Shown here piece by piece: positions 39,510-64,000 of a stretch of 64,000 bases of DNA; within the stretch, counting starts at the first letter, position 1, and every line of letters begins with the position of its first letter. Position numbers and translations under genes: made by a program. The notes below the pieces were generated by a model. The model was not told the origin of the DNA. It saw only the letters and a program-made list of their open reading frames with translations, and ran no database searches. The stretch is from Chlorokybus atmophyticus (Eukaryota; Plantae; Mesostigma and Chlorokybus algae), in assembly GCA_009103225.1 (NCBI GenBank), contig RHPI01003020.1:16481-80480 (forward strand), read 5' to 3'.

Positions 39510-42279
39510 AGGGGAATATTCCGGTCCAAAGGTACTAACCAATGATGGTCATTTGACGTCAATCGATGCGCCACTGCTATAGAGAGTCTACCACAATTTG
39601 TCCGCTCATGCAATGAGCTGTGTCACAGCACCATCTATAGTGATAGCTTGTTGACTTACAGTAACACCCTTTTTGCTCAAGTAAGTGGTTCATATGCAAT
39701 TTGCTTAATATAGTGCAGTGCGCATCAGGGTACGCTTTGTCGCGTGCGAGCATTGTCATCACATAGTGCACATAAAAGTCATTGGAATGTTGAGTGATCG
39801 CATCAAGGCCACCGCACACGACATCACAAGCATACGCACTCTGCGGTGCATTTAATCTCATCAGTGAGAATAGGCTGCATTAGCAGGCAACCTCCCTTTC
39901 TTATCATCGAGGAGGAGACCTCTCGAGACCTCTACGGCTGCAGCTGTAGCTCTCATACCCGCGAGCGAAAGGCAGCAAGAGTGACAGCAGCGAACGAGTC
40001 CTCCTCCAACCACACCTCCTCCCAGTCTCATCCCTTGCAGGGTATAGCTGTGGACTTCTCCAACAGCGACAACAAGATGGAGTCGAGCTCTTACAATGCC
40101 TTGCGCTTTTCAAACGTCCTGGCACCACCTTGCAGGTTGAGTTCATTATTAAGTTTTAATTCAAAATGACTTGGTAAGCCATTACGAGCAACAACTTGAA
40201 GTGGACCGATGACATCTCCTTTCATATGGCGGCATAATGTTTAAACTACGAAGCCCACAAGGTGTGGAGGTGAGTAGCAGAGTTGCATCAACTTAAAGGG
40301 TATAGGGCGCTTTCCAGCGCCATCACATCTTTATCGGCATTAGCAGTGCCAGTATCCAACCCTGCTCCGGTTACAAGTGTCACTCCATTTACAGCACCGG
40401 AAAGCTGAACAAGCAGTGCTTGCAGTGGAGGAGGCACGATTGACAGCGACCGAGGCCGCCGCCGGGCGTACAGATTGCCAAAGTAGAGTCCTAAAGCGCA
40501 TAGCGGCGCTTTATCATGACCATCAGCCTGCAGGCGGGTGTCCGATATTTACAGCCCTGCTTTCATATAACGACATGAAAATCTCTCTCTCGCTGTCTCT
40601 TTTTGCACGTTTACCCGGCAACTGATTAGGGATCGAGGGAATGACGGGTGCCTGACCCTGTCTGACTGTGCATGCCTTTATCGCATACATTAATTCTAGA
40701 CTGTTGGTTCTGCTGTCGGCTAATGTGGACTGAGGCTGACGGCCAACAACCGGTCGATAGGTGTGAAGGTGAGCACGTGATTTTGTAATAACGGCCAACC
40801 ACCGGTTGCGCAGCATGGACGATCGGCGGTTGGCCATCATCACAATTATAGCAAACAAGTCACCACTCGGTCACTTATAGTGACGAACGATAATCGGTCG
40901 TAGCGTGACCGTTGTAAAGTATGCGCGGCGGCCTGCTTGTTGTGGCAAGCAAGTCGCCTTTGCAAACGGATATGTGATGTAATGTGCCGGCCGACTATCG
41001 TTGTTACGTAGCCGTGGCACATTATGCGCCTATGCTGATAGATTAATCAATCAACCGCCCGTTCCTATTTGTTGCCGAATGATGCCGGCAAGACGGAAAT
41101 ATGGTACATATTGCTTTAGTATGCCGTACACTATAAAACTTCGTCACAATGAAGATATATGAAGTAATGCAAATTTTTCGGCGGATGTATTGCCCGCCGT
41201 CCAAACGTAATTATTTTAATGTATCGATAGGGTGCTTTGTAACGGATTGAGTGCGATTGCTGTTAGTTAGTAGTGTAAAAAGACTTGTTGAGGATATGAG
41301 GGGTCGTCCAACCTCGTATCAATAGAACATGTTTTTGAGAATGCGTTTTCAATGGCCACCTGTCGTGTCGTATTAGAATCGCGCGCGGTATCAAATGTGT
41401 CGTTTCTTGCTCGCCATCTGTGAGACGGTAAAAGATGCTTTCGGCTTTATACTTTATACCGTACTCGGCAACTGTGTTGTACTCTGTCATCGCCTTGTTT
41501 GCATAGCTATTTGATTGGCGCATTGCATCGTAACGGCGCTACTACTTTTTGTGAATGGTTCCAAATCATAAATCAACATGAAAGCAATTTATTGCTTTTA
41601 CTTCATAACTCGAGTTGCTAAGTTGCTGTGCTCATTACGGGCTTATGGAGCGAATTTAAGAAATACTACACAAAACATGTATATGGGTGAATATTATATT
41701 GCTAGGTATGGAAGCTTACATTGTGATGGGCGAACCAAGTAAGCGTATCACTCAAGTCCAACGTTGCAGAAGTAGTGTACACTATTGTAGACAAATCTAT
41801 ATATTAAAAACATTTCGTGACTAATACATATACCATCATGCTTCATTATAACATTCAACATAGACCATGTTGACATGAATAATCTACCGCCATGCTGTCC
41901 ATGTATGTACACACCGTTTGTGCTCTTATTATCACGTTATTAGCACATTTAAACAATATGTGGATGTGCTTTACATGGCCGAGATCTTTTTGCTGTAGAT
42001 CCAACGGCTTGAGGCCGGTCGTCGCTGCTTAGCCAATGAGCGGCAGGAGGGACGCGCATACTGCCGCGCAGCCCGTCAGTCGCGAGTGCCATAAGCGATG
42101 GGCCAGTGATGGCGCTTTGTCGTGTGAGGATACGTGTGTGATGTGCCGGCCGGCCGGCCGGTCCAGCCAACCAGCTGCAGCACTAGTTAATGGGTTGTGC
42201 TGCTCAACCAATATAATGAGGATACCGATGGTATCCTTGGCAACCAGGATTTGCTTGCAGCTGGCGTAGTCAACAGCTA

Positions 42280-45117
42280 CCGTATTTACCCCATTAGAGT
42301 TCCCCCCTTTTTATACAGTTCCCCCCGGATTTTGCCAGGGGGAACTCTATTCGGGGGGAAACTCTATTCCTATAGGGGAACTCTATTCTGTAGCAGGGAT
42401 GCCGCTGGTATCGTTATGTCAACGATATCAGCGACCCCCCGCGATGGCTGTTCACACGGACTTCCCGCCAAACCTAAAGCAAACAGAGCATAGGCGGCGG
42501 CGGCGAGGTAGCCGGCGTAGTTGACGGCGGGGTAGGCCAACGCAATGGTAGGAGCGGCAGCAGCCAGGCTGGCTGCTCAGCATCGATTGGAGAGGCAGGC
42601 CGACGAAGCGGAGGCGGCGGCAAGGATTGCAACTGAAGCAGCTGCAAGGGCACGCGAGGCTGCAGCAAACGTCGCAGTAGAGGAGCAGCGAGACGCAGGA
42701 GGCCACCGTCCAACTGGCGTTGGGAAACGTGTGCACGCTGCCCGCCGCACCAATGGTGGAGGTCGGCGGTACAAGCGCCGAGCCTTCACCGTCCATCAGA
42801 AGGTGTGTCGATTAATCAGCAATGTGCGTGTGTCGTTACAGTGCGTGCGTGTGCTGCATTGTGTCGTTGTTGTTGCTGTGTGCGTGTGCTGCGTTGTGTT
42901 GTTGTTGTGTTAGTGTTGTCGCTGTGTGCGCGTGCTGCATGGTATTGTTGTCGTTACTGTCTGTGTGCTGCGTCGTGTCGTTGTGTTGTCAGCAATGTGT
43001 GTGTGTGCGTGTCGTTGTCGTCATTGTTGCTGCTGATTAGCTGTTGTGTTGTTGCCATGTTTGCTGCTAACTAGTTGCTGTTTAACTCCACAGCGCAAGT
43101 TCATCCAAATAGCAAAGCATATAGGCATTAAGAAGACGGAGAGAGAGCATGGCGTCCATGCTCCATCTTTGCGAAAGTGGCTTCGCCAAGAGTTGGAGAT
43201 AATGGCTGCCAGTGCTAGCGACTGCAGACTGAAGGGTGGTGGCAGGGGGGTTGCTTATCCCGAGCTAGATACTGTGGTGTATGACTACATTGTAGATCGA
43301 CGTTCTCGCGGGCTTGGAGTCACCCAAGCCATGATTAGAGTATGCACAATCAGCTATTGCAAGTGTGGCATGACGCAATTGGTGTGCATGTGTGTGGCAT
43401 GCGGCAGTCAATGTGCATGCGCATGATCATGTTTGTTTGCCTGTGCAGTTGCAGGCCCAACGCTTGATTGTGGAGCACAATGAGAGCGTTGATGACGATG
43501 TGAACATTTGGACCTTGAAGGTGTCCTTGAATTGGGTCGTGCGTTTCATGGCGCGCCATGATCTCACCGTGCGTCGCCATATGAAGGTGGGGCAGAAACT
43601 GCCTCATGATGTTGCCGAGAAGGTTGAGGGGCATCGCGTCTACATCACATTGATGAAAGAGCGTCACAAATATGCCTCCAGCCAGATTGTCAACATGGAT
43701 GAGGTACCCGTGACGGTGGATATGGCGGCTGGTCGGACAGTCAATCAGCAAGGCAGCCGAACCGTGACTATGCGCACGACTGGTAAGCATGCACATGTGT
43801 CAACGAAAGTGCTGTGTTGTGTTGGCAATGCTGAATGCGAGTCTGCACATTGACAGGAAATGAGAAGAAGAATGTGACGGTGGTGTTAGCGTGTGCTTTG
43901 GACGGCACAAAGCTACCACCTGTTATTATTCCCAAGCGCAAGACTATCCCCAACGACTTGGTGGTGCCGCAGGGGATAGTTGTATGGGCTAACGAGAAGG
44001 GATGGATGGACGAGGCCCACACGGTGGAGTGGGTGGATGCGGTGATGCGGAAGAGGTCTAAGCGAGTGTTTGGTAGAAGAGCACTGTTGATCTGGGACTC
44101 GTTTTCAGCACACAGGTTCGGTTTAACAGCTTCATGCACGCCATGTGCATGCCACGCACATGCACATCAGTTCTGTTGCTGCCATTGCATGTATGTGTTG
44201 ATGTTGCAATCATGCAGGTGTGACTCTGTGAAGGAACGCCTCAGCGCCATCTCTGTTGATCAAGCAGTCATCCCTGGTGGGTGCACTCCCATTCTGCAGC
44301 CGCTCGATGTTGGCGTCAACAAACCTTTCAAGGATATGCTGCGTGCGAAGGTGAGCATTGTTAACAATGTGCAGTAGCAACAACTACCCTTCTTACTAGT
44401 GATGCTGACTTTGACTGTGTATGTGCTCAGTGGGCTCTGTGGATGGCTGACCCAGCCAACCACTCGTATACGGCGGGTGGCCACATGCGGCACGTTGACT
44501 GGTCAACGTTGTGCACATGGGTGCAGCAGTGTTGGGAGGAGTTGTCTGTTCACACTATTCACAACGCTTTCCGAAAGGCAGGTGTGTGCGAGGCAGATTG
44601 GGCGCCAGAAGATGTTGAGCGCGATGATGTCGACGACATCATGAACATTGATGAGCTACCCCTTGAAGAGCAGGAGGAGCGCATGATGCAGGAGCTAGCT
44701 GAGCTGCACATGCGCGATGAGCGCAACGCTCGCACTGCCGCTAAGCGCATCAACCTTGTATCAGATAGCGAGATCAGTGATGCTAGTGATGCTAGTGACA
44801 GTGATGCTTGAGTCTCTGATGCATGAGCCTTCTATGCAACTTGATGCATGAGTCTTTTATCGTTCACATTCGCATGCATGCGCGCATTGACATGGCACAA
44901 TCAAGGGGCCACTCATTATGCAGCACGCACACACCACGCACAAACGGCAGGCAGTTATGCAGATACTCACGCACGGTAGGCAGGCATACATGCAATACAG
45001 TTCCCATCAGAGGGAACACTAAATGGGGGGGGAACTCTATCACACAAACACAGTTCCCCCTTTGATTTTGCCGGGGGGAACTGCATTCGAGGGGGAACTC
45101 TAATGGGGTAAATACGG
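42280..45117 (+). mobile_element. pogo-superfamily DNA transposon, apparently intact
   Basis: Perfect 27-bp TIRs CCGTATTTACCCCATTAGAGTTCCCCC (42280-42306, 45091-45117), TA target duplication on both sides, and subterminal GGGGAACTCT repeats. Confidence 0.95.
42545..44811 (+). CDS. pogo-family DD35D transposase, 6 exons (42545-42802, 43094-43339, 43449-43782, 43857-44115, 44218-44350, 44431-44811), ~536 aa
   Basis: All GT-AG junctions keep the frame open. RRAFTVHQK/RKFIQ HTH; YPELD and LNWVVRFMARH (CENP-B-type HTH); catalytic NMDEVP, IWDSF, QPLDV, with 35 residues between the 2nd and 3rd Asp. Confidence 0.9.
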
Positions 45118-45761
45118 TAGAAAACAATCCCATAACAGCTGAATGCCTATTCATTTCTCTGCTTGTTACTCTTGCAATTTCATCGATGCTTGTGACATTT
45201 AGCTCAAACGGATGTGATCCTAGATGAGTCGTTGCGTTGGTCTTCGTTGCCTTGCGCGATTGCAGACGCCGACAGCATCAGATAAAGTAAGTTGCCCATA
45301 TTTTGGACACTTATCCACTAGTAAGCGTCCACTGAACGGCCCACTGCAGTGACTGCGAGTGTGACGGTGCTGTCAAAGCAGCAATCAACGTCGTAACATG
45401 GCCGATTTGTGATGTACTAGGGTGATTCTTCAATGTGGTGTGCCGTGAGGTATAGCCGGCACAAAATGGCCGTGCCACACCTGGGCATTCTCCAAACTGA
45501 TACGGATTATGGATGCCCACTACCTGCTGATCACACACTGCCTACTACAGTGCGCGACCCTCGAATGGCACTTGCTCTTTAAGCTTATGGTACGGTGGCA
45601 ACAATGTCAATGTCGCATACTGCAGCTGGCGCGGCTGGTTGCGGGCGGGCAGCTGTCCAAAAAGTGGGCGCCTTACCCTACTCATGGCATAGATCTGCAA
45701 TTCACATGCGCCTGGCAACAAGCGGCCCACATTTGATGAATGCCTTGCGCGCCACTGCAGG

Positions 45762-46544
45762 CCCCGTCAGAGTCCCCCCCCGTATCATGGTATACAGACC
45801 CCCCTGGCAAATGCAAGGGGAGGACTGTATTGAGACATTATAGTCCCCTCCCTTGTTGTGTCCCCCCTCGAAAGGGACAGTGTTAGTGTTATGTCTGAAT
45901 AAGAGTATTGTATAAGATGTATGCGTAATTACGCATACAATATTATATGGTTGCTAACGTTGAACTAATATTGATACACTTCATTCATCACCTAAGCGCT
46001 TAAAGCACATGTACATGGATCAGTCATGAGTGCCATGACGGTCGACGCGTCGTTGACCATCTAGAAATGTTCAGAAATCACACGGTCAGTTTTAATTCAA
46101 TTTTTTGCACGTTAATCACTGAACTGTTGCGTTACACAAGATATACGTAAGTCGTATACTGTAACTCGACGTAATCGGCGGCTTCTGCTACACAATAGAG
46201 CCCCCCCTCCTAATAAAGTCCCCCCCCCCCCCCCCNNNNNNNNNNNNNNNNNNNNNNNNNNNNNNNNNNNNNNNNNNNNNNNNNNNNNNNNNNNNNNNNN
46301 NNNNNNNNNNNNNNNNNNNNNNNNNNNNNNNNNNNNNNNNNNNNNNNNNNNNNNNNNNNNNNNNNNNNNNNNNNNNNNNNNNNNNNNNNNNNNNNNNNNN
46401 NNNNNNNNNNNNNNNNNNNNNNNNNNNNNNNNNNNNNNNNNNNNNNNNNNNNNNNNNNNNNNNNNNNNNNNNNNNNTACAGTCCCCCAGGACAATCGAGG
46501 GGGGGACTGTACAAAAAGGGGGAACTCTGACGGGGTAAATACGG
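45762..46544. mobile_element. Related pogo-type non-autonomous element spanning an assembly gap
   Basis: Right end GGGGGAACTCTGACGGGGTAAATACGG|TA (46518-46546). Partial left end CCCCGTCAGAGTCCCCC at 45762. CAGTCCCC/GGGGACTG subterminal motifs. Confidence 0.6.
46236..46476. other. Assembly gap (N run); smaller gaps at ~52410-52430 and 58466
   Basis: N characters, each next to a poly-C or poly-G run. Confidence 0.99.
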
Positions 46545-48002
46545 TATACTTTAGAACGTAACTGTATGCTTATTGTCGCAGTTTAGTAAAGAGAGAGTCT
46601 ATTGGAGCCTTGGTGCAGGTGCAATTCGTAACTAAGCAGGTTCAAGAAGGCCCAAACCCGGCTTGAGGCGCGCAATTGCCCCGACCTGAGAGCACCTGGT
46701 GCCACTTGATACGGCTTGCTCAGCAATGGCACCACCTGAACCAAGCTCGGCGCCGTCTGCGATTCGGTGTAGTCAGCAACACGATGCGGTGACTTATCAT
46801 GTTATCGAGCGATGATGTTCAACCGCACAAAGTGACCGGTGATTACAGTGTGCATCATTTAATGCGCGGCCCGGGTGCAAAACCGCGGTTCACCTAGCAG
46901 TAGGTACGTGCGCGGCTATCCTTGACTTAGGGCGACATTTCTAAAGCCCGCTTACACTTGTTCACGGGCCGAAAAATGACACTCAGGGATCGGTCCAGGT
47001 TGGACGCTTTGACCGCTATGAGATGCACTGAGTGTCTTGCTTGAGCTAACAGATGCGTCGGTCATTGGTTGCACATAAGCCGGTTGTACACTGACTACGG
47101 TCCAGGTTGCGTGTCAGCACCTGTCCCGTCGCCGCGGGTGCAACTTGCACCGTGCAAGTATACTGGCAGGCAAAGCAAAGCTGATAGGATTTTACGCGTG
47201 TGGCTAAATAAGTGAGAGAATGTGCATGAGTGACACGCGCAATCTAGCCACTCAAAGTGTGTGCAACACATTGTTGCCGTCAAAGTGTGTGCAACACACT
47301 CTTGCTGTCAAGGTGTGTGTGCTGGATTGGGAAAGTGGTGACGTTTGCTGGCTGACTTGGTGGCTGGGCCTGGCTTAGCCTGGCCTGGCCTGGCCTGGCC
47401 CAGCAGTTGCTGCGAGGTAGAAGCTCCTATGCTCACCGCGGCTAGCAGAAGTGGCCCGTTAGTATGTGTTGAAAATAACTACTAGTCGTCATATAAGGCA
47501 TGCAGTGTCGCAGGTGACTAGCACACGCACTCTCTTTCCTTTCTCTTTGCACTCAATCTTCTCTCTCACTCACTCACTCAATTTCGGTCTTCCAGTGAGG
47601 TCTCCTCAATATGTCACTGTCGTATATCGGCACGCACGCATGCATAACATTCTCTCTCTACATCAGTCGTCAGTTCAGTGCGCTAGAAGCATACATGTCA
47701 AAGCACACACATACGTAAGCATGCTCCTTCCTCCTCGCTCTCACTCACTCTCTCACTCACTCATGTTTGCTCCTTAGCGAGGCTTCTATCTATCTCACGC
47801 TGTCACTCTACAATACTGGTACGCACGCCCATGCACATGCGAGTGTCTGTCAGACAGACATTCACATGTGCATGTGCGTGCGTACCAGCACAAGAGAGCC
47901 ACACAGACACACACATGCGTGTTTACATGCTCATATCTCTCATTGTATGCAGTGAGACCCACACCCCACCCTACGGCTGGTACATAGTTCACCTCGCACA
48001 GG

Positions 48003-50629
48003 ATGGAAATGTCGGACCACGGCATAATTGTGGTAGAGAAGACCACCAGCGACATGCTAGACTCTCCTTCACTCAAGCCCTCTTCCTCCTTCCACAACCA
48101 CACCAGCTCACTCCCAGCCCGTTTCCCCTACATTTGTGAGAGTAGCTACTCTCACAAATCGCAACTCCAAGTCCCCGACACCATCCCTCCCCCGGACAAG
48201 GACGCCGACAACATCCCCGTCCTCAGCACTGGTGCTCATGATCATCATCACGAAGATGAAGAAGAGAACCCAAGCTGGCTGTTTGACCCGCGAGTGGATG
48301 AACTGTGTGGGGACTTCACACTGCACGGTAGGTCTATGTGTGCGTGTGTGTGCTCGTTGTTTACTGGGACAAATACCTTCCTTTGTTTCTCAGCCATACC
48401 GAGGGCCATGAATATCCACACCAGTCTAAGGCGGCGGTCAGTGTGGCTGTTAGTATTCATCGCTGGGTTGTGTGTGTTCCTGTGGCTGGCAACCATACAG
48501 ATCAGAGCGCACCTCGCCCGCAACACGAACACCAACGTCGCACTGATCGACGAGTCGTACGGGGCAGGACTGCCCTTCCCCTCAGTCACAATTTGGAACC
48601 AAAACACAGTATGTGCGTGTGCGTGTGTATGCGCACCTGTGTGTGACAGGCCCCACAGCATGTAGTGTGGCTCACTCACCTTCATCATGCAGGTAAGGAG
48701 ATCTGCAGTGGAGAACACTTCATACTTTAATGAAATCTGCGGCGAGGAAGCCGGCCTGCTCGGGGATGTCAGCGGCGGGGTCCAACGATACCCACTCGAC
48801 TGGAACGACACTCAAGTATTGGTTTTAAGTTTGAACATTTGTTGGTTCAAACCGCGTTACTGACTATGTGTTGTTGTTGTTGTTGTTGTGCAGATTCTTG
48901 ATGCTGCGCATCAGTTGGAGGACATGTTGGTCGGATGCACGTTTTCAGGTCGCAATTGCTCTGCCGCAGATTTCTACACGTCCGTGTCGCCATTCCCAAA
49001 CCAGCGATACGGCGCCGCGTACACCTTCAGTAAGACTTGCAAGCATCATGCGTGCGTGCATGCGTGTGTAGTTATGGGTTTTGAAACACCAATTCCCTGG
49101 CAGATATATATGGCCAGTTGGCAAGCTATTCGGGAGGTCCGACTGGAGGACTGTCTTTGGCAATACACATCGGACAAGTATGCATGCGAACATCCTCGCA
49201 CACATGCAACTATGCCAACAATTGGCACATGCCCACACGTAGGACACTTGCGTGCGAGCATACTTTACTTGGCTACTGTGCCAGTCTGTAACCACGTTCA
49301 TCATCATTGTTGTATGTGTTCTCCTCCAGGATGACTACTGTCCTCGCACGTGGGGCGCCGGCATTGCTTTTGAGCTGCACCACCACGTGCTGCTCACCAA
49401 CGTGGAGGCCACGCAGCACATCAACCCAAACAACAGAGCGGTACGTATACGTATGTTGTGGTTGTTGGCACTCGTTGACTGATTCCCATACTTACTCATC
49501 AGGTCATTCGACCTGGGGTTTGGGCCAATGTGGACCTCTCTGCCGTGGAACAAAATCTTCTCGGACCACCTTATGGTAAGTACACTGTGTACTATATATC
49601 TGCGCTGTGCGCATGTGCGTGCGCATGCGTGTACTGCAACTTGTGCACGTGTCCATGCTGCGAGCACACATGTGTGGGTGTGGGTGTGGATGTGTAGGTG
49701 TATCTAACTGCTGCCTTGCTGCAGGTCCCGAGTGCGTTGACTTAAACAAGGGTCAGTCGTACCCGCCGAAGACGGCTGCGCTGGATTGTGCCATCAACTG
49801 CGCAGGGTTCGAGACATACAACAGCTCCCAGCTCATACACTTCAACCGCGCGGACTTCCTCGCCGTTGAATCTGCAGACGTGAAGTGCGTTGAAGACTGT
49901 TTCAACCTCACACTCACAACGTAAGCAGGGATGGTGTGGGTGTTTGGCATGGTCACACACGCGCACGTGCGCACCCACGCACCCACGCTCTCTGTGTCTC
50001 CAGGTTTTGCCAGTCTGGCAGTGTGAACAATGTCGTGACAACAATGGAACTTCCCTCGAGAGCATCATTCCGTTCCATTCTGAAGCGTTGGCCTTCGCTG
50101 TCACTCAACCACACCATCGATGACATCTTTAACGACACCACTCTCTACGACCAAGTCTACACCAACATGCAAAGAAACCTTATTATTGTCAACTTCTACT
50201 TCTCCAAACTGATACTAACCCAGTTCCACGAGTCTATTGCCATCACATTCGGGGCGCTCATATCCAACATAGGAGGTTTATCGGGCCTTTTTCTTGGTGC
50301 ATCGGCCATAAGCATGCTCGAGTTGGTGGAGATAATAACTTTGTTGGGTATGATCAAGTACAACAAGACACGCGCTGCGGCGGCTTCACAACGCTACTTA
50401 AAGGACTTGGATTGGAGCCAGCAGCAGCATGTAAGTTTATCAGACATGTGTGCGTGTGCATGTGTGTGCGTAAAGTAAGGTTTTGGGTTCTGTTGTGCAG
50501 GGCATATGGGCCTCCCAAGCGATGAAGAAACCCGCGGCATGTGCGTTGCAAAGGGGCAAATCGGGTGTGGACAAGTACATTCGTAAAGAGCGAAGGTCTA
50601 GCTCTGGGCAATTGTTGCAACCTGTATAG
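48003..50629 (+). CDS. DEG/ENaC (ASIC/ENaC-like) cation channel subunit, paralogue 1. Ten coding exons (48003-48327, 48394-48608, 48693-48815, 48894-49029, 49104-49177, 49330-49440, 49503-49575, 49725-49920, 50004-50430, 50501-50629), ~602 aa
   Basis: All introns are GT-AG and frame-preserving. DFTLH; TM1 VWLLVFIAGLCVFLWLA; FPSVTIWNQN.VRRS; HQLEDMLVGCTFSGRNCS; YGAAYTFN; GPTGGLSL; IRPG; PPYG; NLIIVNFYF; TM2 ISNIGGLSGLFLGASAISMLE. Confidence 0.92.
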
Positions 50630-50992
50630 TACACACATGATGGAGTGTAAGGCATTTTGAACGTGCTTGAAACACCTCTTGCATGTATACAATAGCACTT
50701 AACTCCAACCGTATGCAGCATTCATTAGCATCAGCTCTACGTGCCAGCGCAGTGCAACTTGCACTGATTGTTAGCCCTTTGGAATGGCTAACGATTGTGC
50801 ATGTCCATGCAGCTGCGCAAGCACACTTTTAGAGTATAACGCGGAATTACGTCATGCACACACTCACCAGTATGTTTGTTAGTGCCGTTGCCAAGCATGC
50901 CGACTGAGCTAGCACGATTGTACTAGTGGCCTGTAAGCAGGCGCTATGAATGTAAGCTAGCTGCAGTTGTGTAGTGGTGTGTGTTTGGCAAG

Positions 50993-51045
50993 GGGAGGGG
51001 GGCATGCCTGTTTTGTCTCAGACAAAACAGGCATGCCCCCCTCCC
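50993..51045. repeat. Perfect 53-bp hairpin palindrome (26-bp arms, 1-nt loop); copies at 57050-57102 and ~58672-58724
   Basis: GGGAGGGGGGCATGCCTGTTTTGTCT-C-AGACAAAACAGGCATGCCCCCCTCCC. Confidence 0.95.
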
Positions 51046-52531
51046 ACTTCAAACAACACAACGCGATGTCCGGGATCATCCACATTATGTTGCGTTGCGT
51101 TGCGTTGTTCAAAGTGTTATATGTGATGCCATGAACTATTTATCAAATGCAAATTGAGAGGCAACGACAGCTTTTTGTTCAAATAAGTAACCATATTTAC
51201 GCATGTAAGATATTGGGTGGGTTTTATATACTGCGTGAAGCATCAATTGCGCCCTCTTATTCACCAGTCAACAGTCCCGGACAAGAGCTCTCATAAGCCC
51301 CTCTTATGGATTCTGCAAGGACAAGCAAGGTATGTTGAGCTCATTACAATGAAATGCGATGAATGGTCTTTCCTTGTTGAGAATATCAAATAATGTACAT
51401 GCAGTGTCCAAGTTGTATTTCTCAATTAAATTCGTGATCTTATTGAAATAACAATTCTTCACTCTGCCCCCCCCCCCCCTATAATTTGTTGTAATGAACC
51501 TGCTTGATCACGTGTTCATTGTTATAAGATATGGCAAAGACCGATAGAATCAACAATCTCATAAGCTTTGTGTGTGTAATGCGATAATTATTATGTCATA
51601 CGTGTCATTTTACAGGATTGCGTGAGGCTATCGCATGCGTGTATCTTCATTGTAGCTCAGTCAACAAATTGTGGACCATGATAAGCTCATGGCTGCATTA
51701 CAATTATAATCATGAATAGATCTAAGCACCTGATTCGATTGCATTATGAGACTCTTATATCGCATGTGTCATAATGTTTACATAAACTGATTGTTTCATA
51801 ACATAATTACGTGGTCTCATGCCACTATGTATGCCATGGTAATTGCCTTGTTCATTATTTATGCCTTTGCTTGATGATAAATGAGTGCGTGAGTAAGCAT
51901 GAATTGTCTTTCAAATGACACTAACCGCCAACTTTACTATAAGCAAAGAGGGAAATGACCCTTATCAACTACGCGCGGCTAGCGAATCAAAAACTTTATA
52001 TAGCTTACATACGCGTCGGACTTAATATAGCTTACATACGCGTCGCCTCATACATCGTAATAGTAATCTAAAAGACACAACGGTGTTGAGCTATTGCGGT
52101 CAATCTTGATTTTGATTGCAGCTTTTGTGTAAGAGTAGAGTTGATTGTCTTACAGTCGTAAACGATGTAACTTACACAAACCCCCTACCTATGGCTATTA
52201 CGCATCATATTAAATGCACATACCGCTATACTATTTTATTAGATATTAGCATCCGGCTTGAATAGAAGCTTGATTTCAGCCCACTTATTTTATGCCTTGG
52301 TGAAACAAGTTGGCGTAGTAGCTAAAAACAAGCACATTTGTAGATGTGACTTGAACTAGCATAGTGTCAAATGGTGCAGGGGGATCTTCCCCCCCCCCCC
52401 CCCCCCCCCNNNNNNNNNNNNNNNNNNNNNGGGGGGGGGGGGGGGGGGAGGGCATGTCACACACTTGCCTTGGCACGTGCAAGTGGTGCTTCACACACAT
52501 TAATGATGCCTTACAACCCATCATGTGTGTA

Positions 52532-53154
52532 CTATACAGGTTGCAACAGTTGTCCAGAGCTAGACCTTCGCTCTTTGCGAATGTACTTGTCCACACCCGA
52601 TTTGCCCCTTTGCAACGCGCCTGCCGCGGGTTTCGTCATCGATTGGGAGGCCCATATGCCCTGCACAACAAAACCCACTCAACCCCACAAATGCGCACGC
52701 ACACGCACACATGTTTGACAAACTTACATGCTGCTGCTGGCTCCAATCCAAGTCTTTTCTATAGCGTTGGGAAGCCGCCGCAACGCGTGTCTTATCATAC
52801 TTAATCATGCTCAACAAAGTCAATATCTCAATCAACTCGAGCACGCTTATGGCCGATGCGCCAAGGAAGAGTCCCAACAATCCTCCTATGTTGGATATGA
52901 GCGCCCCGAATGTAATGGCAATAGACTCATTGAACTGGGTTAGGATCAGTTTGGAGAAGTAGAAGTTGACAAGGATGAAGTTGTCCTGCATGTTGGAATA
53001 GACTTTGTTGTAGAGAGTGGTGTCGTTAAAGATGTCCTCAACGGTGTGGTTGAGTGCCAGCGAAGGAAAGCGCTTCAGAATGGAACGGACGGATGCCCTC
53101 GAAGGAAGTTCCATTGTTGTCACGACGTTGTTGATGCTGCCGGACTGGCAAAAC
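52532..53154 (-). CDS. DEG/ENaC 3' fragment (last two exons, TM2 and C-terminus) of a diverged paralogue
   Basis: FCQSGSINNVV...ISNIGGLLGLFLGASAISVLELIE...QQQH|GIWASQSMTK...QPV*. Open frame with many synonymous differences from paralogue 1. Truncated at ~53179 inside the preceding intron. Confidence 0.85.
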
Positions 53155-54059
53155 CTGCAGGCATAATGTGGGGAGGGGGGTCCCGTCGCCGCGGGTGCAA
53201 CTTGCACCGTGCAAGTATACTGGCAGGCAAAGCAAAGCTGATAGGATTTTACGCGTGTGGCTAAATAAGTGAGAGAATGTGCATGAGTGACACGCGCAAT
53301 CTAGCCACTCAAAGTGTGTGCAACACATTGTTGCCGTCAAAGTGTGTGCAACACACTCTTGCTGTCAAGGTGTGTGTGCTGGATTGGGAAAGTGGTGACG
53401 TTTGCTGGCTGACTTGGTGGCTGGGCCTGGCTTAGCCTGGCCTGGCCTGGCCTGGCCCAGCAGTTGCTGCGAGGTAGAAGCTCCTATGCTCACCGCGGCT
53501 AGCAGAAGTGGCCCGTTAGTATGTGTTGAAAATAACTACTAGTCGTCATATAAGGCATGCAGTGTCGCAGGTGACTAGCACACGCACTCTCTTTCCTTTC
53601 TCTTTGCACTCAATCTTCTCTCTCACTCACTCACTCAATTTCGGTCTTCCAGTGAGGTCTCCTCAATATGTCACTGTCGTATATCGGCACGCACGCATGC
53701 ATAACATTCTCTCTCTACATCAGTCGTCAGTTCAGTGCGCTAGAAGCATACATGTCAAAGCACACACATACGTAAGCATGCTCCTTCCTCCTCGCTCTCA
53801 CTCACTCTCTCACTCACTCATGTTTGCTCCTTAGCGAGGCTTCTATCTATCTCACGCTGTCACTCTACAATACTGGTACGCACGCCCATGCACATGCGAG
53901 TGTCTGTCAGACAGACATTCACATGTGCATGTGCGTGCGTACCAGCACAAGAGAGCCACACAGACACACACATGCGTGTTTACATGCTCATATCTCTCAT
54001 TGTATGCAGTGAGACCCACACCCCACCCTACGGCTGGTACATAGTTCACCTCGCACAGG

Positions 54060-56686
54060 ATGGAAATGTCGGACCACGGCATAATTGTGGTAGAGAAGAC
54101 CACCAGCGACATGCTAGACTCTCCTTCACTCAAGCCCTCTTCCTCCTTCCACAACCACACCAGCTCACTCCCAGCCCGTTTCCCCTACATTTGTGAGAGT
54201 AGCTACTCTCACAAATCGCAACTCCAAGTCCCCGACACCATCCCTCCCCCGGACAAGGACGCCGACAACATCCCCGTCCTCAGCACTGGTGCTCATGATC
54301 ATCATCACGAAGATGAAGAAGAGAACCCAAGCTGGCTGTTTGACCCGCGAGTGGATGAACTGTGTGGGGACTTCACACTGCACGGTAGGTCTATGTGTGC
54401 GTGTGTGTGCTCGTTGTTTACTGGGACAAATACCTTCCTTTGTTTCTCAGCCATACCGAGGGCCATGAATATCCACACCAGTCTAAGGCGGCGGTCAGTG
54501 TGGCTGTTAGTATTCATCGCTGGGTTGTGTGTGTTCCTGTGGCTGGCAACCATACAGATCAGAGCGCACCTCGCCCGCAACACGAACACCAACGTCGCAC
54601 TGATCGACGAGTCGTACGGGGCAGGACTGCCCTTCCCCTCAGTCACAATTTGGAACCAAAACACAGTATGTGCGTGTGCGTGTGTATGCGCACCTGTGTG
54701 TGACAGGCCCCACAGCATGTAGTGTGGCTCACTCACCTTCATCATGCAGGTAAGGAGATCTGCAGTGGAGAACACTTCATACTTTAATGAAATCTGCGGC
54801 GAGGAAGCCGGCCTGCTCGGGGATGTCAGCGGCGGGGTCCAACGATACCCACTCGACTGGAACGACACTCAAGTATTGGTTTTAAGTTTGAACATTTGTT
54901 GGTTCAAACCGCGTTACTGACTATGTGTTGTTGTTGTTGTTGTTGTGCAGATTCTTGATGCTGCGCATCAGTTGGAGGACATGTTGGTCGGATGCACGTT
55001 TTCAGGTCGCAATTGCTCTGCCGCAGATTTCTACACGTCCGTGTCGCCATTCCCAAACCAGCGATACGGCGCCGCGTACACCTTCAGTAAGACTTGCAAG
55101 CATCATGCGTGCGTGCATGCGTGTGTAGTTATGGGTTTTGAAACACCAATTCCCTGGCAGATATATATGGCCAGTTGGCAAGCTATTCGGGAGGTCCGAC
55201 TGGAGGACTGTCTTTGGCAATACACATCGGACAAGTATGCATGCGAACATCCTCGCACACATGCAACTATGCCAACAATTGGCACATGCCCACACGTAGG
55301 ACACTTGCGTGCGAGCATACTTTACTTGGCTACTGTGCCAGTCTGTAACCACGTTCATCATCATTGTTGTATGTGTTCTCCTCCAGGATGACTACTGTCC
55401 TCGCACGTGGGGCGCCGGCATTGCTTTTGAGCTGCACCACCACGTGCTGCTCACCAACGTGGAGGCCACGCAGCACATCAACCCAAACAACAGAGCGGTA
55501 CGTATACGTATGTTGTGGTTGTTGGCACTCGTTGACTGATTCCCATACTTACTCATCAGGTCATTCGACCTGGGGTTTGGGCCAATGTGGACCTCTCTGC
55601 CGTGGAACAAAATCTTCTCGGACCACCTTATGGTAAGTACACTGTGTACTATATATCTGCGCTGTGCGCATGTGCGTGCGCATGCGTGTACTGCAACTTG
55701 TGCACGTGTCCATGCTGCGAGCACACATGTGTGGGTGTGGGTGTGGATGTGTAGGTGTATCTAACTGCTGCCTTGCTGCAGGTCCCGAGTGCGTTGACTT
55801 AAACAAGGGTCAGTCGTACCCGCCGAAGACGGCTGCGCTGGATTGTGCCATCAACTGCGCAGGGTTCGAGACATACAACAGCTCCCAGCTCATACACTTC
55901 AACCGCGCGGACTTCCTCGCCGTTGAATCTGCAGACGTGAAGTGCGTTGAAGACTGTTTCAACCTCACACTCACAACGTAAGCAGGGATGGTGTGGGTGT
56001 TTGGCATGGTCACACACGCGCACGTGCGCACCCACGCACCCACGCTCTCTGTGTCTCCAGGTTTTGCCAGTCTGGCAGTGTGAACAATGTCGTGACAACA
56101 ATGGAACTTCCCTCGAGAGCATCATTCCGTTCCATTCTGAAGCGTTGGCCTTCGCTGTCACTCAACCACACCATCGATGACATCTTTAACGACACCACTC
56201 TCTACGACCAAGTCTACACCAACATGCAAAGAAACCTTATTATTGTCAACTTCTACTTCTCCAAACTGATACTAACCCAGTTCCACGAGTCTATTGCCAT
56301 CACATTCGGGGCGCTCATATCCAACATAGGAGGTTTATCGGGCCTTTTTCTTGGTGCATCGGCCATAAGCATGCTCGAGTTGGTGGAGATAATAACTTTG
56401 TTGGGTATGATCAAGTACAACAAGACACGCGCTGCGGCGGCTTCACAACGCTACTTAAAGGACTTGGATTGGAGCCAGCAGCAGCATGTAAGTTTATCAG
56501 ACATGTGTGCGTGTGCATGTGTGTGCGTAAAGTAAGGTTTTGGGTTCTGTTGTGCAGGGCATATGGGCCTCCCAAGCGATGAAGAAACCCGCGGCATGTG
56601 CGTTGCAAAGGGGCAAATCGGGTGTGGACAAGTACATTCGTAAAGAGCGAAGGTCTAGCTCTGGGCAATTGTTGCAACCTGTATAG
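54060..56686 (+). CDS. DEG/ENaC paralogue 1, duplicate copy (same exon model +6057; possibly an assembly artefact)
   Basis: Apparently identical to 48003-50629, including introns. Confidence 0.7.
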
Positions 56687-58466
56687 TACACACATGATGG
56701 AGTGTAAGGCATTTTGAACGTGCTTGAAACACCTCTTGCATGTATACAATAGCACTTAACTCCAACCGTATGCAGCATTCATTAGCATCAGCTCTACGTG
56801 CCAGCGCAGTGCAACTTGCACTGATTGTTAGCCCTTTGGAATGGCTAACGATTGTGCATGTCCATGCAGCTGCGCAAGCACACTTTTAGAGTATAACGCG
56901 GAATTACGTCATGCACACACTCACCAGTATGTTTGTTAGTGCCGTTGCCAAGCATGCCGACTGAGCTAGCACGATTGTACTAGTGGCCTGTAAGCAGGCG
57001 CTATGAATGTAAGCTAGCTGCAGTTGTGTAGTGGTGTGTGTTTGGCAAGGGGAGGGGGGCATGCCTGTTTTGTCTCAGACAAAACAGGCATGCCCCCCTC
57101 CCACTTCAAACAACACAACGCGATGTCCGGGATCATCCACATTATGTTGCGTTGCGTTGCGTTGTTCAAAGTGTTATATGTGATGCCATGAACTATTTAT
57201 CAAATGCAAATTGAGAGGCAACGACAGCTTTTTGTTCAAATAAGTAACCATATTTACGCATGTAAGATATTGGGTGGGTTTTATATACTGCGTGAAGCAT
57301 CAATTGCGCCCTCTTATTCACCAGTCAACAGTCCCGGACAAGAGCTCTCATAAGCCCCTCTTATGGATTCTGCAAGGACAAGCAAGGTATGTTGAGCTCA
57401 TTACAATGAAATGCGATGAATGGTCTTTCCTTGTTGAGAATATCAAATAATGTACATGCAGTGTCCAAGTTGTATTTCTCAATTAAATTCGTGATCTTAT
57501 TGAAATAACAATTCTTCACTCTGCCCCCCCCCCCCCTATAATTTGTTGTAATGAACCTGCTTGATCACGTGTTCATTGTTATAAGATATGGCAAAGACCG
57601 ATAGAATCAACAATCTCATAAGCTTTGTGTGTGTAATGCGATAATTATTATGTCATACGTGTCATTTTACAGGATTGCGTGAGGCTATCGCATGCGTGTA
57701 TCTTCATTGTAGCTCAGTCAACAAATTGTGGACCATGATAAGCTCATGGCTGCATTACAATTATAATCATGAATAGATCTAAGCACCTGATTCGATTGCA
57801 TTATGAGACTCTTATATCGCATGTGTCATAATGTTTACATAAACTGATTGTTTCATAACATAATTACGTGGTCTCATGCCACTATGTATGCCATGGTAAT
57901 TGCCTTGTTCATTATTTATGCCTTTGCTTGATGATAAATGAGTGCGTGAGTAAGCATGAATTGTCTTTCAAATGACACTAACCGCCAACTTTACTATAAG
58001 CAAAGAGGGAAATGACCCTTATCAACTACGCGCGGCTAGCGAATCAAAAACTTTATATAGCTTACATACGCGTCGGACTTAATATAGCTTACATACGCGT
58101 CGCCTCATACATCGTAATAGTAATCTAAAAGACACAACGGTGTTGAGCTATTGCGGTCAATCTTGATTTTGATTGCAGCTTTTGTGTAAGAGTAGAGTTG
58201 ATTGTCTTACAGTCGTAAACGATGTAACTTACACAAACCCCCTACCTATGGCTATTACGCATCATATTAAATGCACATACCGCTATACTATTTTATTAGA
58301 TATTAGCATCCGGCTTGAATAGAAGCTTGATTTCAGCCCACTTATTTTATGCCTTGGTGAAACAAGTTGGCGTAGTAGCTAAAAACAAGCACATTTGTAG
58401 ATGTGACTTGAACTAGCATAGTGTCAAATGGTGCAGGGGGATCTTCCCCCCCCCCCCCCCCCCCCN

Positions 58467-59816
58467 GCAATTGATGCTTCACGCAGTATATAAAACCCAC
58501 CCAATATCTTACATGCGTAAATATGGTTACTTATTTGAACAAAAAGCTGTCGTTGCCTCTCAATTTGCATTTGATAAATAGTTCATGGCATCACATATAA
58601 CACTTTGAACAACGCAACGCAACGCAACATAATGTGGATGATCCCGGACATCGCGTTGTGTTGTTTGAAGTGGGAGGGGGGCATGCCTGTTTTGTCTGAG
58701 ACAAAACAGGCATGCCCCCCTCCCCTTGCCAAACACACACCACTACACAACTGCAGCTAGCTTACATTCATAGCGCCTGCTTACAGGCCACTAGTACAAT
58801 CGTGCTAGCTCAGTCGGCATGCTTGGCAACGGCACTAACAAACATACTGGTGAGTGTGTGCATGACGTAATTCCGCGTTATACTCTAAAAGTGTGCTTGC
58901 GCAGCTGCATGGACATGCACAATCGTTAGCCATTCCAAAGGGCTAACAATCAGTGCAAGTTGCACTGCGCTGGCACGTAGAGCTGATGCTAATGAATGCT
59001 GCATACGGTTGGAGTTAAGTGCTATTGTATACATGCAAGAGGTGTTTCAAGCACGTTCAAAATGCCTTACACTCCATCATGTGTGTACTATACAGGTTGC
59101 AACAATTGCCCAGAGCTAGACCTTCGCTCTTTACGAATGTACTTGTCCACACCCGATTTGCCCCTTTGCAACGCACATGCCGCGGGTTTCTTCATCGCTT
59201 GGGAGGCCCATATGCCCTGCACAACAGAACCCAAAACCTTACTTTACGCACACACATGCACACGCACACATGTCTGATAAACTTACATGCTGCTGCTGGC
59301 TCCAATCCAAGTCCTTTAAGTAGCGTTGTGAAGCCGCCGCAGCGCGTGTCTTGTTGTACTTGATCATACCCAACAAAGTTATTATCTCCACCAACTCGAG
59401 CATGCTTATGGCCGATGCACCAAGAAAAAGGCCCGATAAACCTCCTATGTTGGATATGAGCGCCCCGAATGTGATGGCAATAGACTCGTGGAACTGGGTT
59501 AGTATCAGTTTGGAGAAGTAGAAGTTGACAATAATAAGGTTTCTTTGCATGTTGGTGTAGACTTGGTCGTAGAGAGTGGTGTCGTTAAAGATGTCATCGA
59601 TGGTGTGGTTGAGTGACAGCGAAGGCCAACGCTTCAGAATGGAACGGAATGATGCTCTCGAGGGAAGTTCCATTGTTGTCACGACATTGTTCACACTGCC
59701 AGACTGGCAAAACCTGGAGACACAGAGAGCGTGGGTGCGTGGGTGCGCACGTGCGCGTGTGTGACCATGCCAAACACCCACACCATCCCTGCTTACGTTG
59801 TGAGTGTGAGGTTGAA
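58467..59816 (-). repeat. 1.35-kb inverted copy of 55958-57307 (and 49901-51250)
   Basis: The reverse complement matches with coordinate sum 115774. The first mismatch I found is at 59817. Confidence 0.92.
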
Positions 59817-61730
59817 GCAGTCTTGGACGCACTTCACGTCGGCGGATGTGACGGCGAGGAAGTCCGCGCGGTTGAAGTGTATGAGCTGGGAGCTGTTGTA
59901 TGTCTCGAACCCTGCGCAGTTGATGGCACAATCCAGCGCAGCCGTCTTCGGCGGGTACGACTGACCCTTGTTTAAGTCAACGCACGCGGGACCTGATGAT
60001 AGCCACTCAGCAGTTTAGTACACCCACCCACACACATACACATCTGTGCTCGCAGCATGAAACACACGTGCACATGCACAGGTTGCAGTACACACGCGCA
60101 AGTGCACGCACATGCTCACGCAGTTCAACTACAAAGTAAACAATGACTCACCGTAAGGTGGTCCAAGGAGATTTTGCTCTACGGCAGAGAGGTCCACGTT
60201 GGCCCAAACCCCAGGTCGAATGACCTGCAGAGAGTGTGTTAGTGAGCCAGTCAGTGTGAGTGCCCACAACCACACCCACCACCACAACTTGTGTACCGCT
60301 CTGTTGCTTGGGTTGATGTGCTGCGTGGCCTCCACGTTGGTGAGCAGCACGTGGTGATGCAGCTCGAAAGCGACACCGGCGCCCCACGTGCGAGGACAGT
60401 AGTCGTCCTGCAAAGCACACGTACAACATGGTGTTAAACACGGGTCGCAGACTGGCACAGTAGGCAAGTAAGTTGTGCTTGCATGCAAGTGTCCTACATG
60501 TGGGCATGTGCAGTGAGCTTGCATGCGTGTGGCCGCGTGTTTGCTTGCATACCTGTCCTATGTTTATGGCCAGAGACAATCCTCCAGTCGGGCCTCCCGA
60601 ATAGCTCGCCAACTCGCCAAATATATCTGCCATGGAGGTGTTGGTATCTTTATAAACTAGTACACATGCACACACGCGTGCGCACGCACACACATCATGT
60701 GTGCTAATCTTACTGAAGGTGTATGCGGCGCCGTATCGTTGGTTTGGAAATGGCGTCACGGACGGGTAGAAGTCTGCGGCGGAGCACTCGCGCCCCTGAA
60801 ACGTGCACCCGACCAGCATGTCATCCAACTGATGCGCAGCATTAAGAATCTGCACACAACACATAGTCAGTCACGCAGTTTGAAACCAACAAACATTCGA
60901 ATTTGAAACCAGTACCTGAGTGTCGTTCCAGTCTAGAGGGTAGCGTTGGACCCCACCGCTGACATCCCCAAGCAGGCCGACGTCCTCCCCGCAGATATCT
61001 TCAAAGTTAGGAGTGTTCTCAACAGCAGACCTCCTGACCTGCATGGGCAAAGATCAGCCACGCTACATGCTGTTGGGGACTGTCACACACATACACATAC
61101 GGTGTTTTGGTTCCATATGGTAACTGATGGGAAGGGCAGTCCTGCCCCGTAGGATTCGTCAATGAGTGCGACATTGGTGGTTGTGTTGTGGGCGAGGTAG
61201 GCTCTGATCTGTACGGTTGCCAGCCACAAGAACACACACAACCCCGCGATGAATACCAAAAGCCACACTGACCGTCGCCTTAGACTGGTGTGGATATTCA
61301 TCGCCCTCGGTATGGCTGAAACATGAAACAGCGGGAAAATGTAATGAAAAATGTATCTATCACGCATGTAACAACAAGCACACAAGCACACATACACATG
61401 CATACACCTACCGTGCAGTGTGAAGTCCCGACATAGTTCGTCCACTCTTGGGTCAAACAGCCAGCTTGGGTCCTCTTCATCTTCATGCTGTTGATCATGA
61501 GCATTGGTGCTGAGGGCGGAGATGTTGTCGGCGTCCTTGTCCGGGGGAGGGATGCTGTCGGGGGCTACGAGTTGTGGTTGTAGTTTATGGGAAGAGGGGA
61601 AAGAGGTTGGGAGTGAGCTGGTGTGGTGATGTGATATGTCGAAGGAGGAAGAGGGCTTGATTGAAGGAGAGTCAAGCATGTGCATGTCGCCGGTGGTTTT
61701 CTCTACCACGATTATACCGTGTTCTGCCAT
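59088..61730 (-). CDS. DEG/ENaC paralogue 2, same 10-exon layout; exons 1-8 diverged from paralogue 1, exons 9-10 identical to it as assembled
   Basis: MAEHGIIVVEKTT...DFTLH|AIPRAMN...FPSVTIWNQN|VRRSAVENTPNF...|ILNAAHQLDDMLVGCTFQGRECS...YGAAYTF. Splice sites are conserved. Confidence 0.88.
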
Positions 61731-64000
61731 CCTTCCTGCGCGATCATTGTGATGTTCACTTTGTACCAGTGAGTTTTGTATCTCACACAATCACACCCCG
61801 AGCGCGTACACACACTTGCAAGAGAAGAGACGATCTCTCTAGCATGTGAGTGAGTGAGAGAGTGATATGAGTGCAAGGAGCATGTGTGCGTACTCTGACA
61901 TGCATGCTTCTGGCAAATTGCATCTGTGTGATCTCAACAATGCTGTGTACATGCGTGTGCGTGCGTGCTGATGTAAGAGACTGACAATGATAGCTTAAGC
62001 AAAATGATGCGAGTGAGTGCAAAGAGGAAGGAGCGTGCGTTAGTATTTATAAGTACTCTGCCATTGAAAATCTGCTAGGAAGACTGCAGTTACGTTTACG
62101 TCATCACATCCACCTAGATCGGCCAAGCGCTGTGCTCACGACAGCAGCGCTTACCTGGCAAAACTGCTGGGCTGCCAGGCCAGGCCAGGCTCAGCAACCA
62201 AGCCAGCCAGCCAAACGTCACCACCTCCCAGTCCTACACCGTGGCAAACTTCTCTGCCTACATACTCTGCCGTTAAAGTATGTTTCACTCTTTCTGGAAA
62301 TAACTTGAGGGGAAAGAGTGTGGTGCACACACGCCGCCCAATCTGCTTGCCACTCACGCAAAATGGCTAGGCTATCTACTCTATGCTGTAGCAGCCTTGG
62401 CATGCCAACACTTGCACCCGCGGCGCCGGGACAGGTGCTGACACGCAATCATTCATCACCGGCAGTAACCGGCTTACTGACGTACGGTGACCGACGTAAA
62501 CGCCATCAAACCGGATATACAGGGCATTATATACCGGCTAGAGTGTCCAACCTGGACCGACCCCTGGCTGTCGTTTCGCCCCTGAAGCGGGCACTTAAGC
62601 TGCCGCGCGACACGCGGTTAAACGTGGTTTTGCGCCCGGCCGCGCAGTCAGGGAACGCACGCTGTGGTTACCATATGATCCTTGCGGTCGGGCATCACCG
62701 CTCGGTGTGATTCGCAGCTTACTAGCCGTGACGCACCGCGTCACTTACTAAACCGAATCTCTGATGGCGCCGCCGGAATAGGTTGCAGCTGGTGCCCTTG
62801 CTGCGTTAGCCACACCACGTGGCACCATCGGGCGCATTCAGGTAGATGCAACTGCGCACCGCAGGCGGGGAGGGGGCTTCGTGAAACTCATGAACTCATG
62901 AACTCCGTAAGTTACGACTGCTCCAACTTGGAGCCTCCAAGCCTCGACAAGATTGCCGTTGCATGTTGATCATGTATTTAATTTAGTGCGGATGTATGAG
63001 CTATTCAAGTAACATGCAAGGCACACACAAACACACAACATTCACACGCTCAAACACATGCACAACAGCGAGCAAGCCTTAAAATAAATATAGAGGCATA
63101 GAGGCATACATGCACTATCTATGTGCACTAATTACGTGCGTGCAAGGGGTGAAGATGAGGGCGGGTGAGCAGGCAGGGCAGGGCAGGGCAAAGGCGCGCA
63201 AAGAACCACCACTTGTGGTGGCGCAGCAGCAGCAACGACAGGCGTTTGACGTTGCAATCCTCGCAGGTGCACACCAATAGCAGCAGCAGCAAGCAGGTAG
63301 CAAGGCAGCAGGGCGAGGGCGGGGTGAGGGATGCTGTGCTGTGCGGTGTTGTGGTTGGCGGTGCAGTGCAGCCAAAGGTAGTAGTGTCCAATGTAAGACC
63401 CGTCACAAGTAGTTACAAACAGTCAAAATCAGTCCAAAATAGCCTGCAATCAAAGTCTCCAAGGTCTTGTCATAATTAAGGCAAGATTAGCAAATGCAGA
63501 CCAGTGTGTAATTGATAAGACGTAAGAACTGACTGTCACGCAAGAGCAGCATGCAGACATAGTATGTACATGCGCATGCCTTAAGTTAGTCATTAGCTAA
63601 TACAGAGTTAATTGCATTAATATATGCTCTTTCTACTCGTTTTTGATACATTACGTCGTTATCATGGTATATCATAGGTTGACGTGGCCAGTACGCAAGG
63701 TTTTCCATACGAAGTTCATATGATTGGACAAAACTTCACAGGGTATCGATCATGGTATCTCATGCACAAATATGCGTGCACATGCTAGTCTGCATCACCA
63801 GGCAAGCGGAGCAATCACAAGCAGAGGCAATTCATTTATGTTACATCCAACGCTTGCGCAGAGGTTGTCTTGTTACTTCAGTCTCAGCAGGAACACCAGC
63901 GTAATGTTGTAGAAAATCACTTTGCCAGGCTTGCATAGCATAGATCAGCTGTACACGCCTGCCATGCATACTTGAACCCAAAGGTTGTTTATATGCCCCC

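Follow-up and report, generated by a model that had tools for sequence, protein, structure and literature searches.

Intact, intron-rich genes of the DEG/ENaC channel family in the streptophyte alga Chlorokybus atmophyticus

In animals, DEG/ENaC channels serve in salt reabsorption, touch, acid sensing and peptide signalling, and the origin of the family is unresolved. Non-animal homologues have been reported from Tunicaraptor unikontum, Cafeteria roenbergensis and Symbiodinium (Elkhatib et al., 2023; PMC10507113); in that work and in a second study (Aguilar-Camacho et al., 2023; PMC9822975) only Filasterea-related, heterokont and dinoflagellate homologues are named outside animals. None of the three belongs to the green or plant lineage, and a survey of plant channels with the Pfam profile PF00858 found none in land plants and does not mention Chlorokybus (PMC12806904). 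Our literature search found no paper on DEG/ENaC proteins in the plant lineage, nor one that joins ENaC with Chlorokybus. Here we describe DEG/ENaC genes in a 64,000-nucleotide stretch of DNA (contig RHPI01003020.1, hereafter the window) from the streptophyte alga Chlorokybus atmophyticus. We consider it probable that this genome holds two resident, convergent paralogues in the region, gene A on the plus strand and gene C on the minus strand, each with nine introns. What is new is the recognition and description of the family in this alga; the sequences and gene models are already public, and the public models already carry the PF00858 annotation.

A first-pass annotation of the window, made from the letters alone, had proposed an open 10-exon model of about 602 residues. 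Rebuilding gene A from the DNA by exon chaining reproduced this model (Table 1): all nine introns are bounded by GT and AG, and the resulting protein is letter-identical to P0157, the public model Chlat1 4575. In the Pfam search that the annotation had recommended, the protein scored 132.7 bits against ASC (PF00858; cut-off 23.6) over profile positions 2-454 of 455. Individual exons match the profile in collinear order, and an Atlas search with gene A again returned an ASC assignment. When the exons of A were projected on an inverted copy, they gave an open 600-amino acid frame starting at 61730 with nine splice positions as in A. Gene C, taken as exons 1-8 of this copy (residues 1-417) followed by the exons 53154-52728 and 52660-52532, encodes P0155 (Chlat1 4576, 600 aa) exactly, and it matches Pfam ASC along its whole length with 149.2 bits. 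A comparison of exons 1-8 counted 78 synonymous and 59 non-synonymous differences between A and C, with a synonymous divergence (dS) of 0.30 and a ratio of non-synonymous to synonymous divergence (dN/dS) of 0.20. Exons 9 and 10, with 53154-52532 representing C, gave a dS of 0.33 and a dN/dS of 0.22. The proposed paralogue with conserved splice sites and many synonymous differences is thus real, and these ratios indicate that A and C are both maintained under purifying selection. The channel genes of both loci are intact, spliced members of the DEG/ENaC family. We rejected a pseudogene interpretation on the basis of the intact frames, the dN/dS of 0.2 and the spliced transcripts from C, and we rejected allelism of A and C given the dS of 0.3, the opposite orientations and the location of both genes within one scaffold.

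An exhaustive HMMER search with exon 9, together with cluster look-ups, returned proteins of Chlorokybus atmophyticus (EukProt EP00898, JGI Chlat1) as the best matches. Because P0157 and P0155 are encoded exactly in the window, we assign it to the nuclear DNA of this alga, JGI Chlat1 scaffold Chrsp290, in agreement with the green-alga host that had been guessed from the sequence. A marine invertebrate was also considered as the host, and these exact protein matches led us to reject it. P0157 is filed under two accessions, P003971 and P003973, which flank the accession of the C model.

Transcript evidence came from contigs of two public runs, X2 and X3, which derive from two studies (2013 and 2021) and were aligned with gene A. 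These contigs extend from 61711 to 52448 and omit all nine introns at the predicted sites, and a single 2095-nt contig covers exon 1 through the 3' untranslated region. The spliced contigs carry the C base at every listed variant site (40 of 40). In exon 9 they show 53 base differences from A and an indel pair at 50172/50175 that changes Q-R-N to Q-D-N, as in the exon at 53154-52728. Contig ends map to 61682-61711 and 52448-52477, with position 52448 one base off the poly-G run. Since the contigs combine C variants, all junctions and the 53154-52728 type of exon 9, we conclude that C is transcribed and spliced as P0155. Other X2 contigs match short parts of A (49049-49208, and 49969 onward) and then run into sequence found nowhere in the window; these probably represent further paralogues or variant copies.

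ASIC1 (human and chicken; PDB 7cfs, 9e4a and 2qts) is the best match to gene A in both sequence and fold. A phmmer search of the PDB with A returned human ASIC1a (7cfs) with an E value of 4e-24 and an alignment that runs from before the first transmembrane helix (TM1) to after the second (TM2). An AlphaFold2 model of A built with 45 homologues has a mean predicted local distance difference test score of 77 and a β-rich core above 90; it places one helix at residues 120-149 and another from residue 500 on, and the tails (1-85 and 566-602) are disordered. In the structural comparison with ASIC1 that the first-pass annotation had suggested, the predicted fold agreed: all of the 50 best PDB matches in a Foldseek search were ASIC or FaNaC structures, the best with an E value of 2.9e-28 and a target TM-score of 0.69. 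The two predicted helices and the ASIC1a alignment also bear out the transmembrane helices and GLFLGAS pore that had been read from the sequence. A and ASIC1 share FPxVT after TM1 (FPSVT in A), the CxFxGxxCS hairpin (C236 and C243 in A), the GLFxGAS filter and the LELxE/D acidic pair in TM2 (LELVE in A). GLFLGAS of A aligns with GLFIGAS of ASIC1a, and its G and S are invariant in a 12-sequence alignment. The ENaC α, β and γ subunits (PDB 6wth) have the same fold, and their palm and TM2 align with A at E values of 8e-12 to 1e-7, a weaker match than that of ASIC. Unlike ENaC, A lacks the GRIP/furin-cleaved finger insertion, and its filter is GAS rather than one of the G/S-x-S variants.

Gene A also differs from ASIC1 in several respects. 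Identity is about 22%, and A is longer at both ends, with an N-terminal tail of about 100 extra residues and a C-terminal one of about 70. The cysteine of FPxVTxCN is replaced by W and its partner in YGxCYTFN by A in the alignment with ASIC1a, so that one conserved disulfide is lost. The thumb of A contains 6 cysteines, whereas that of ASIC1 contains 10. The His-Gly (HG) motif before TM1 reads L-H-A in A, in C and in a further Chlorokybus paralogue (Chlat1 4583), and an X3 contig confirms the splice that produces this reading; the paralogue P0003 retains H-G. The glycine of this motif matters for gating in ENaC. Because some family members vary at the motif, HA lowers the expectation of typical gating, not of family membership.

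The Chlorokybus proteome contains four distinct members of the family: P0157, P0155, P0001 and P0003. The last three are 87%, 61% and 44% identical to A, respectively, and P0001 is not encoded in the window. In a maximum likelihood tree of 52 proteins, the four form one clade with 99% support. The family has clearly diversified inside the Chlorokybus lineage. Two environmental proteins, P0095 (Logan SRR23287135) and P0161 (Logan SRR25569787), are the nearest relatives at about 30% identity, and they join the four in a clade with 100% support and a long stem. No labelled animal group encloses this larger clade, which joins ASIC-like animal sequences at only 86% in the Shimodaira-Hasegawa-like approximate likelihood ratio test, where the branching is unresolved and gives no supported placement in the ASIC clade. 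The tree, of a kind that the first-pass annotation had recommended, covers Chlorokybus, animal and environmental proteins; the homologues from Tunicaraptor, Cafeteria and Symbiodinium were compared through the publication. They resemble the Chlorokybus proteins in lying outside animals, in being patchily distributed and in raising the same question of loss versus transfer.

In full-length scoring, P0095 reached 250 bits compared with about 100 for any labelled animal protein. P0095 and P0161 share with the Chlorokybus proteins the sequence TIWN instead of TxCN and a G or A where the partner cysteine would stand, and the disulfide pair is missing in all six proteins. Of the two environmental proteins only P0095 has the HA motif. 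Word-indexed protein searches with P0001, with a five-sequence subfamily alignment and with the 12-sequence alignment retrieved only Chlorokybus proteins, P0156 and P0161. P0095 is an intronless open reading frame (ORF) of 549 amino acids on contig L001:1-4665, which has a GC content of about 27%. It adjoins a gene that encodes a SufE domain and in which a NadA domain may start with the next exon (a weak Atlas match); a SufE-NadA fusion would hint, as a weak lead, at a photosynthetic host of P0095. The proteins P0009, P0010, P0022, P0029 and P0071 are among many uninterrupted, full-length ASC ORFs of 470-505 amino acids on metagenome contigs of 2-9 kb, and DEG/ENaC-like genes may be commoner in microbial eukaryotes than the literature states.

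As assembled, 6.6 kb of duplicated sequence separates exon 8 of C from its exon 9. Self-comparison of the window showed that block R1, which comprises gene A and its flanks, and block R2 are identical at 5286 of 5286 bases (Table 1). Positions 47994-51250 match 61743-58467 in inverted orientation at 88%, and a 0.69-kb piece on the minus strand (52475-53157) matches the last exons at 87%. The inverted segment beside C exon 8 has no differences from its counterpart in A over 1330 bp, up to the single-N gap, and immediately upstream the divergence is about 12%; the last A/C mismatch on this copy is at position 49900 in A coordinates. R1 and R2 both terminate in an identical C20 tract that abuts an N gap. 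The left edge of R1 (47122|47123) is crossed collinearly by diverged homology between the upstream regions of A and C (46974-47143 versus 62576-62412, 71%), whereas the left edge of R2 joins the last bases of C intron 8 to A upstream sequence. An A-type exon 9 lies 83 nt from C exon 8 and is used neither by the RNA-like contigs nor by the public model. A and C diverge evenly along their length (dS 0.30 and 0.33) only when C ends in the exons at 53154-52532. The 21-N gap lies 1.78 kb downstream of the A stop and about 100 bp downstream of the assigned C stop at 52532, and the reading frames are safe there since no exon crosses it. The homopolymer runs C20 and G18 at the gaps (52390-52447 and 58447-58465) look like the cause of the assembly breaks.

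Table 1. Coordinates of the channel genes, their duplicated segments and the assembly gaps in the window
Feature	Position	Strand	Remarks
Gene A, DEG/ENaC channel, 602 aa, 10 exons	48003..50629	+	GT-AG introns; equals P0157 (Chlat1 4575); Pfam ASC; AlphaFold2 model resembles ASIC1
Gene A exons	48003-48327, 48394-48608, 48693-48815, 48894-49029, 49104-49177, 49330-49440, 49503-49575, 49725-49920, 50004-50430, 50501-50629	+	
Gene C exons 1-8 (span 59797..61730)	61730-61412, 61315-61101, 61038-60916, 60849-60714, 60626-60553, 60407-60297, 60224-60152, 59992-59797	-	Splice positions as in A
Gene C exons 9 and 10, taken as the true ones (span 52532..53154)	53154-52728, 52660-52532	-	Exact P0155 translation when chained to exons 1-8; carry TM2 and the GAS filter
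C upstream region	61744..62888	-	Diverged homologue of A upstream 46638-47993; blastn 71-89% identity, collinear, inverted
Block R1: gene A plus flanks of 0.9 kb (upstream) and 1.8 kb (downstream)	47123..52408	+	Taken as the real copy
Block R2: identical copy of R1, including gene copy A' (54060-56686)	53180..58465	+	Probable assembly duplicate
Inverted copy of A intron 8, exons 9-10 and 3' flank (49921-51250), beside C exon 8	58467..59796	-	Probably chimeric
Gap of 21 N	52410..52430		Flanked by C20 and G18 runs; the 3' ends of the convergent genes A and C lie on either side
Single-N gap	58466..58466		Preceded by the second occurrence of that poly-C run
Gap of 241 N	46236..46476		

To the left of the channel genes the window carries a pogo-like transposon at 42277-45120, with a DDE_1 ORF (43835-44377) and perfect 30-nt inverted ends (42277-42306 and 45091-45120). 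A third copy of the pogo-like end, 91% matched, occurs at 46513-46546, just right of the 241-N gap. The first-pass annotation had described a pogo-type element that spans this gap. Given that the inverted ends close at 42277-45120, the element need not do so and ends before the gap; the additional end copy does, however, place the transposon family on both sides. The annotation had also argued for the host from a plant-type primer binding site, but this 12-mer is absent from the window at 0 or 1 mismatch, and ARAGORN detected no tRNA gene in the window. The left 37 kb is filled with retroelement ORFs (5000-8300, 15300-17800, 29800-30900 and 35000-36400) of Copia (RVT_2, gag_pre-integrase, rve) and Gypsy type (RVT_1, RT_RNaseH, Integrase_H2C2), and no ordinary host gene was seen there. 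A 275-nt contig of a further run, X1, links 47900-47940 with sequence that is present at 42643 within the pogo-like element; this join may reflect a shared repeat or another arrangement in that sample.

The shared poly-C and N-gap ends, the homology across the edge of R1, the uniform divergence and the unused proximal exon 9 argue that the segment 53180-59796 is most likely a redundant, partly chimeric insertion that arose in assembly. We judge it probable that in the true layout A on the plus strand and C on the minus strand meet tail to tail across a poly-C/G tract. The three or four genes counted initially would then reduce to two real ones, and the description of an expanding family is overstated for this stretch, since assembly error is the most likely source of both A' and the 3' end beside C that is identical to A. 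Alternatively, the genome could contain tandem identical copies of A, one of them nested in a 6.6-kb intron 8 of C, and a perfect 1.3-kb inverted repeat, with identity kept by very recent duplication or gene conversion. We regard this as unlikely, since both identical blocks halt exactly at N gaps beside the same homopolymer, the left junction of R2 has no support from paralogue homology, 100% identity directly adjoins about 12% divergence, and the perfect exon 9 so close to C exon 8 is used by neither RNA-like contig. A different challenge is that the channel genes belong not to the alga but to an animal or protist contaminating its culture. The family is otherwise nearly confined to animals and a few protists (PMC10507113, PMC9822975), which would favour such contamination, as would the lack of an unmistakable plant gene within the window. 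Yet identity to any labelled animal protein is at most about 25-30% and the proteins form their own clade, the runs of two studies made eight years apart contain the same transcripts, and the same pogo-like end is present on the channel contig and on the retroelement-rich contig left of the gap. Given that the assembly carries four distinct paralogues, spread over at least two scaffolds and grouped at 99% support, and that the transposon end lies on both sides of the gap, we conclude that the channel genes are resident in this genome and that contamination is very improbable. Several observations weigh against our interpretation of the locus. No plant-specific gene was seen on the window, and its genome identity rests on the exact protein matches. 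The RNA nature of runs X2 and X3 is a tool's guess without a record, and the junctions that the first-pass annotation wanted confirmed in RNA were all found for C, but not for A: no A-specific spliced contig was seen among the run contigs aligned with A. The identical public proteins P003971 and P003973 do flank the C model as the assembly stands, and gene conversion is possible between inverted paralogues. By analogy with ENaC, the HA motif of A and C could mean that channel function differs or is weak.

How the family came to be in Chlorokybus is a separate question. An ancestor of the alga may have taken up one DEG/ENaC gene from a microbial eukaryote, followed by intron gain and duplication, a scenario to which we give somewhat less than an even chance and which we weigh about equally with vertical descent from an early eukaryote accompanied by many losses. 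Transfer would account for a very patchy distribution, in which the subfamily consists of only the Chlorokybus proteins, P0095 and P0161 among 1.84 billion representative proteins and the family is absent from land plants (PMC12806904), and the closest relative P0095 is intronless and from an AT-rich genome. However, the deep branches of the tree are unresolved, and the long residence that is evident from nine introns and four diverged paralogues fits either origin. A broader idea is that DEG/ENaC is an old eukaryotic family that is not centred on animals, of which a surviving plant-lineage subfamily would give an early-branching streptophyte a working Na+ channel that is not voltage-gated. 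We think this unlikely on present evidence and offer it tentatively. The hallmarks of such a subfamily would be an HA or HG motif, one lost disulfide and a short thumb, and if the idea were true the channel might have a role, for example, in zoospore sensing, or in ionic or osmotic sensing in the subaerial habitat.

Returning to the two-gene layout, we propose that A and C go back to an inverted duplication spanning at least 4 kb (dS about 0.3) and were then maintained by purifying selection. In the predicted model each subunit would have a cytosolic N-terminus of about 120 residues followed by TM1 (about 120-149), a glycosylated extracellular domain with palm, β-ball and a shortened, cysteine-rich thumb, and TM2 from about position 500, which would contain the selectivity filter G-A-S and, further down the helix, a pair of acidic residues. 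If they behave like ASIC and ENaC, the subunits would assemble into trimers that conduct Na+ and are not voltage-gated. TM2 would line the pore, in which the GAS belt and the lower acidic residues may favour Na+; a re-entrant N-terminal loop would carry the H-A motif, and amiloride might block the channel. ASIC-type proton gating is not expected, given the loss of a conserved disulfide and the short thumb.

Under the two-gene layout, the public assembly and annotation double gene A and give C a false 6.6-kb intron. The identity of R1 and R2 and the perfect inverted copy at the end of C would inflate the copy number in the assembly, and with it copy counts taken from it. The intact, intron-rich copies under selection, at least one of them transcribed, extend the DEG/ENaC family to the plant side of the eukaryote tree, and the Chlorokybus channels define a small subfamily with hallmarks of its own. 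Because the genes can be cloned directly for electrophysiology, the ancestral stimulus of the family and the question of loss versus transfer become testable.

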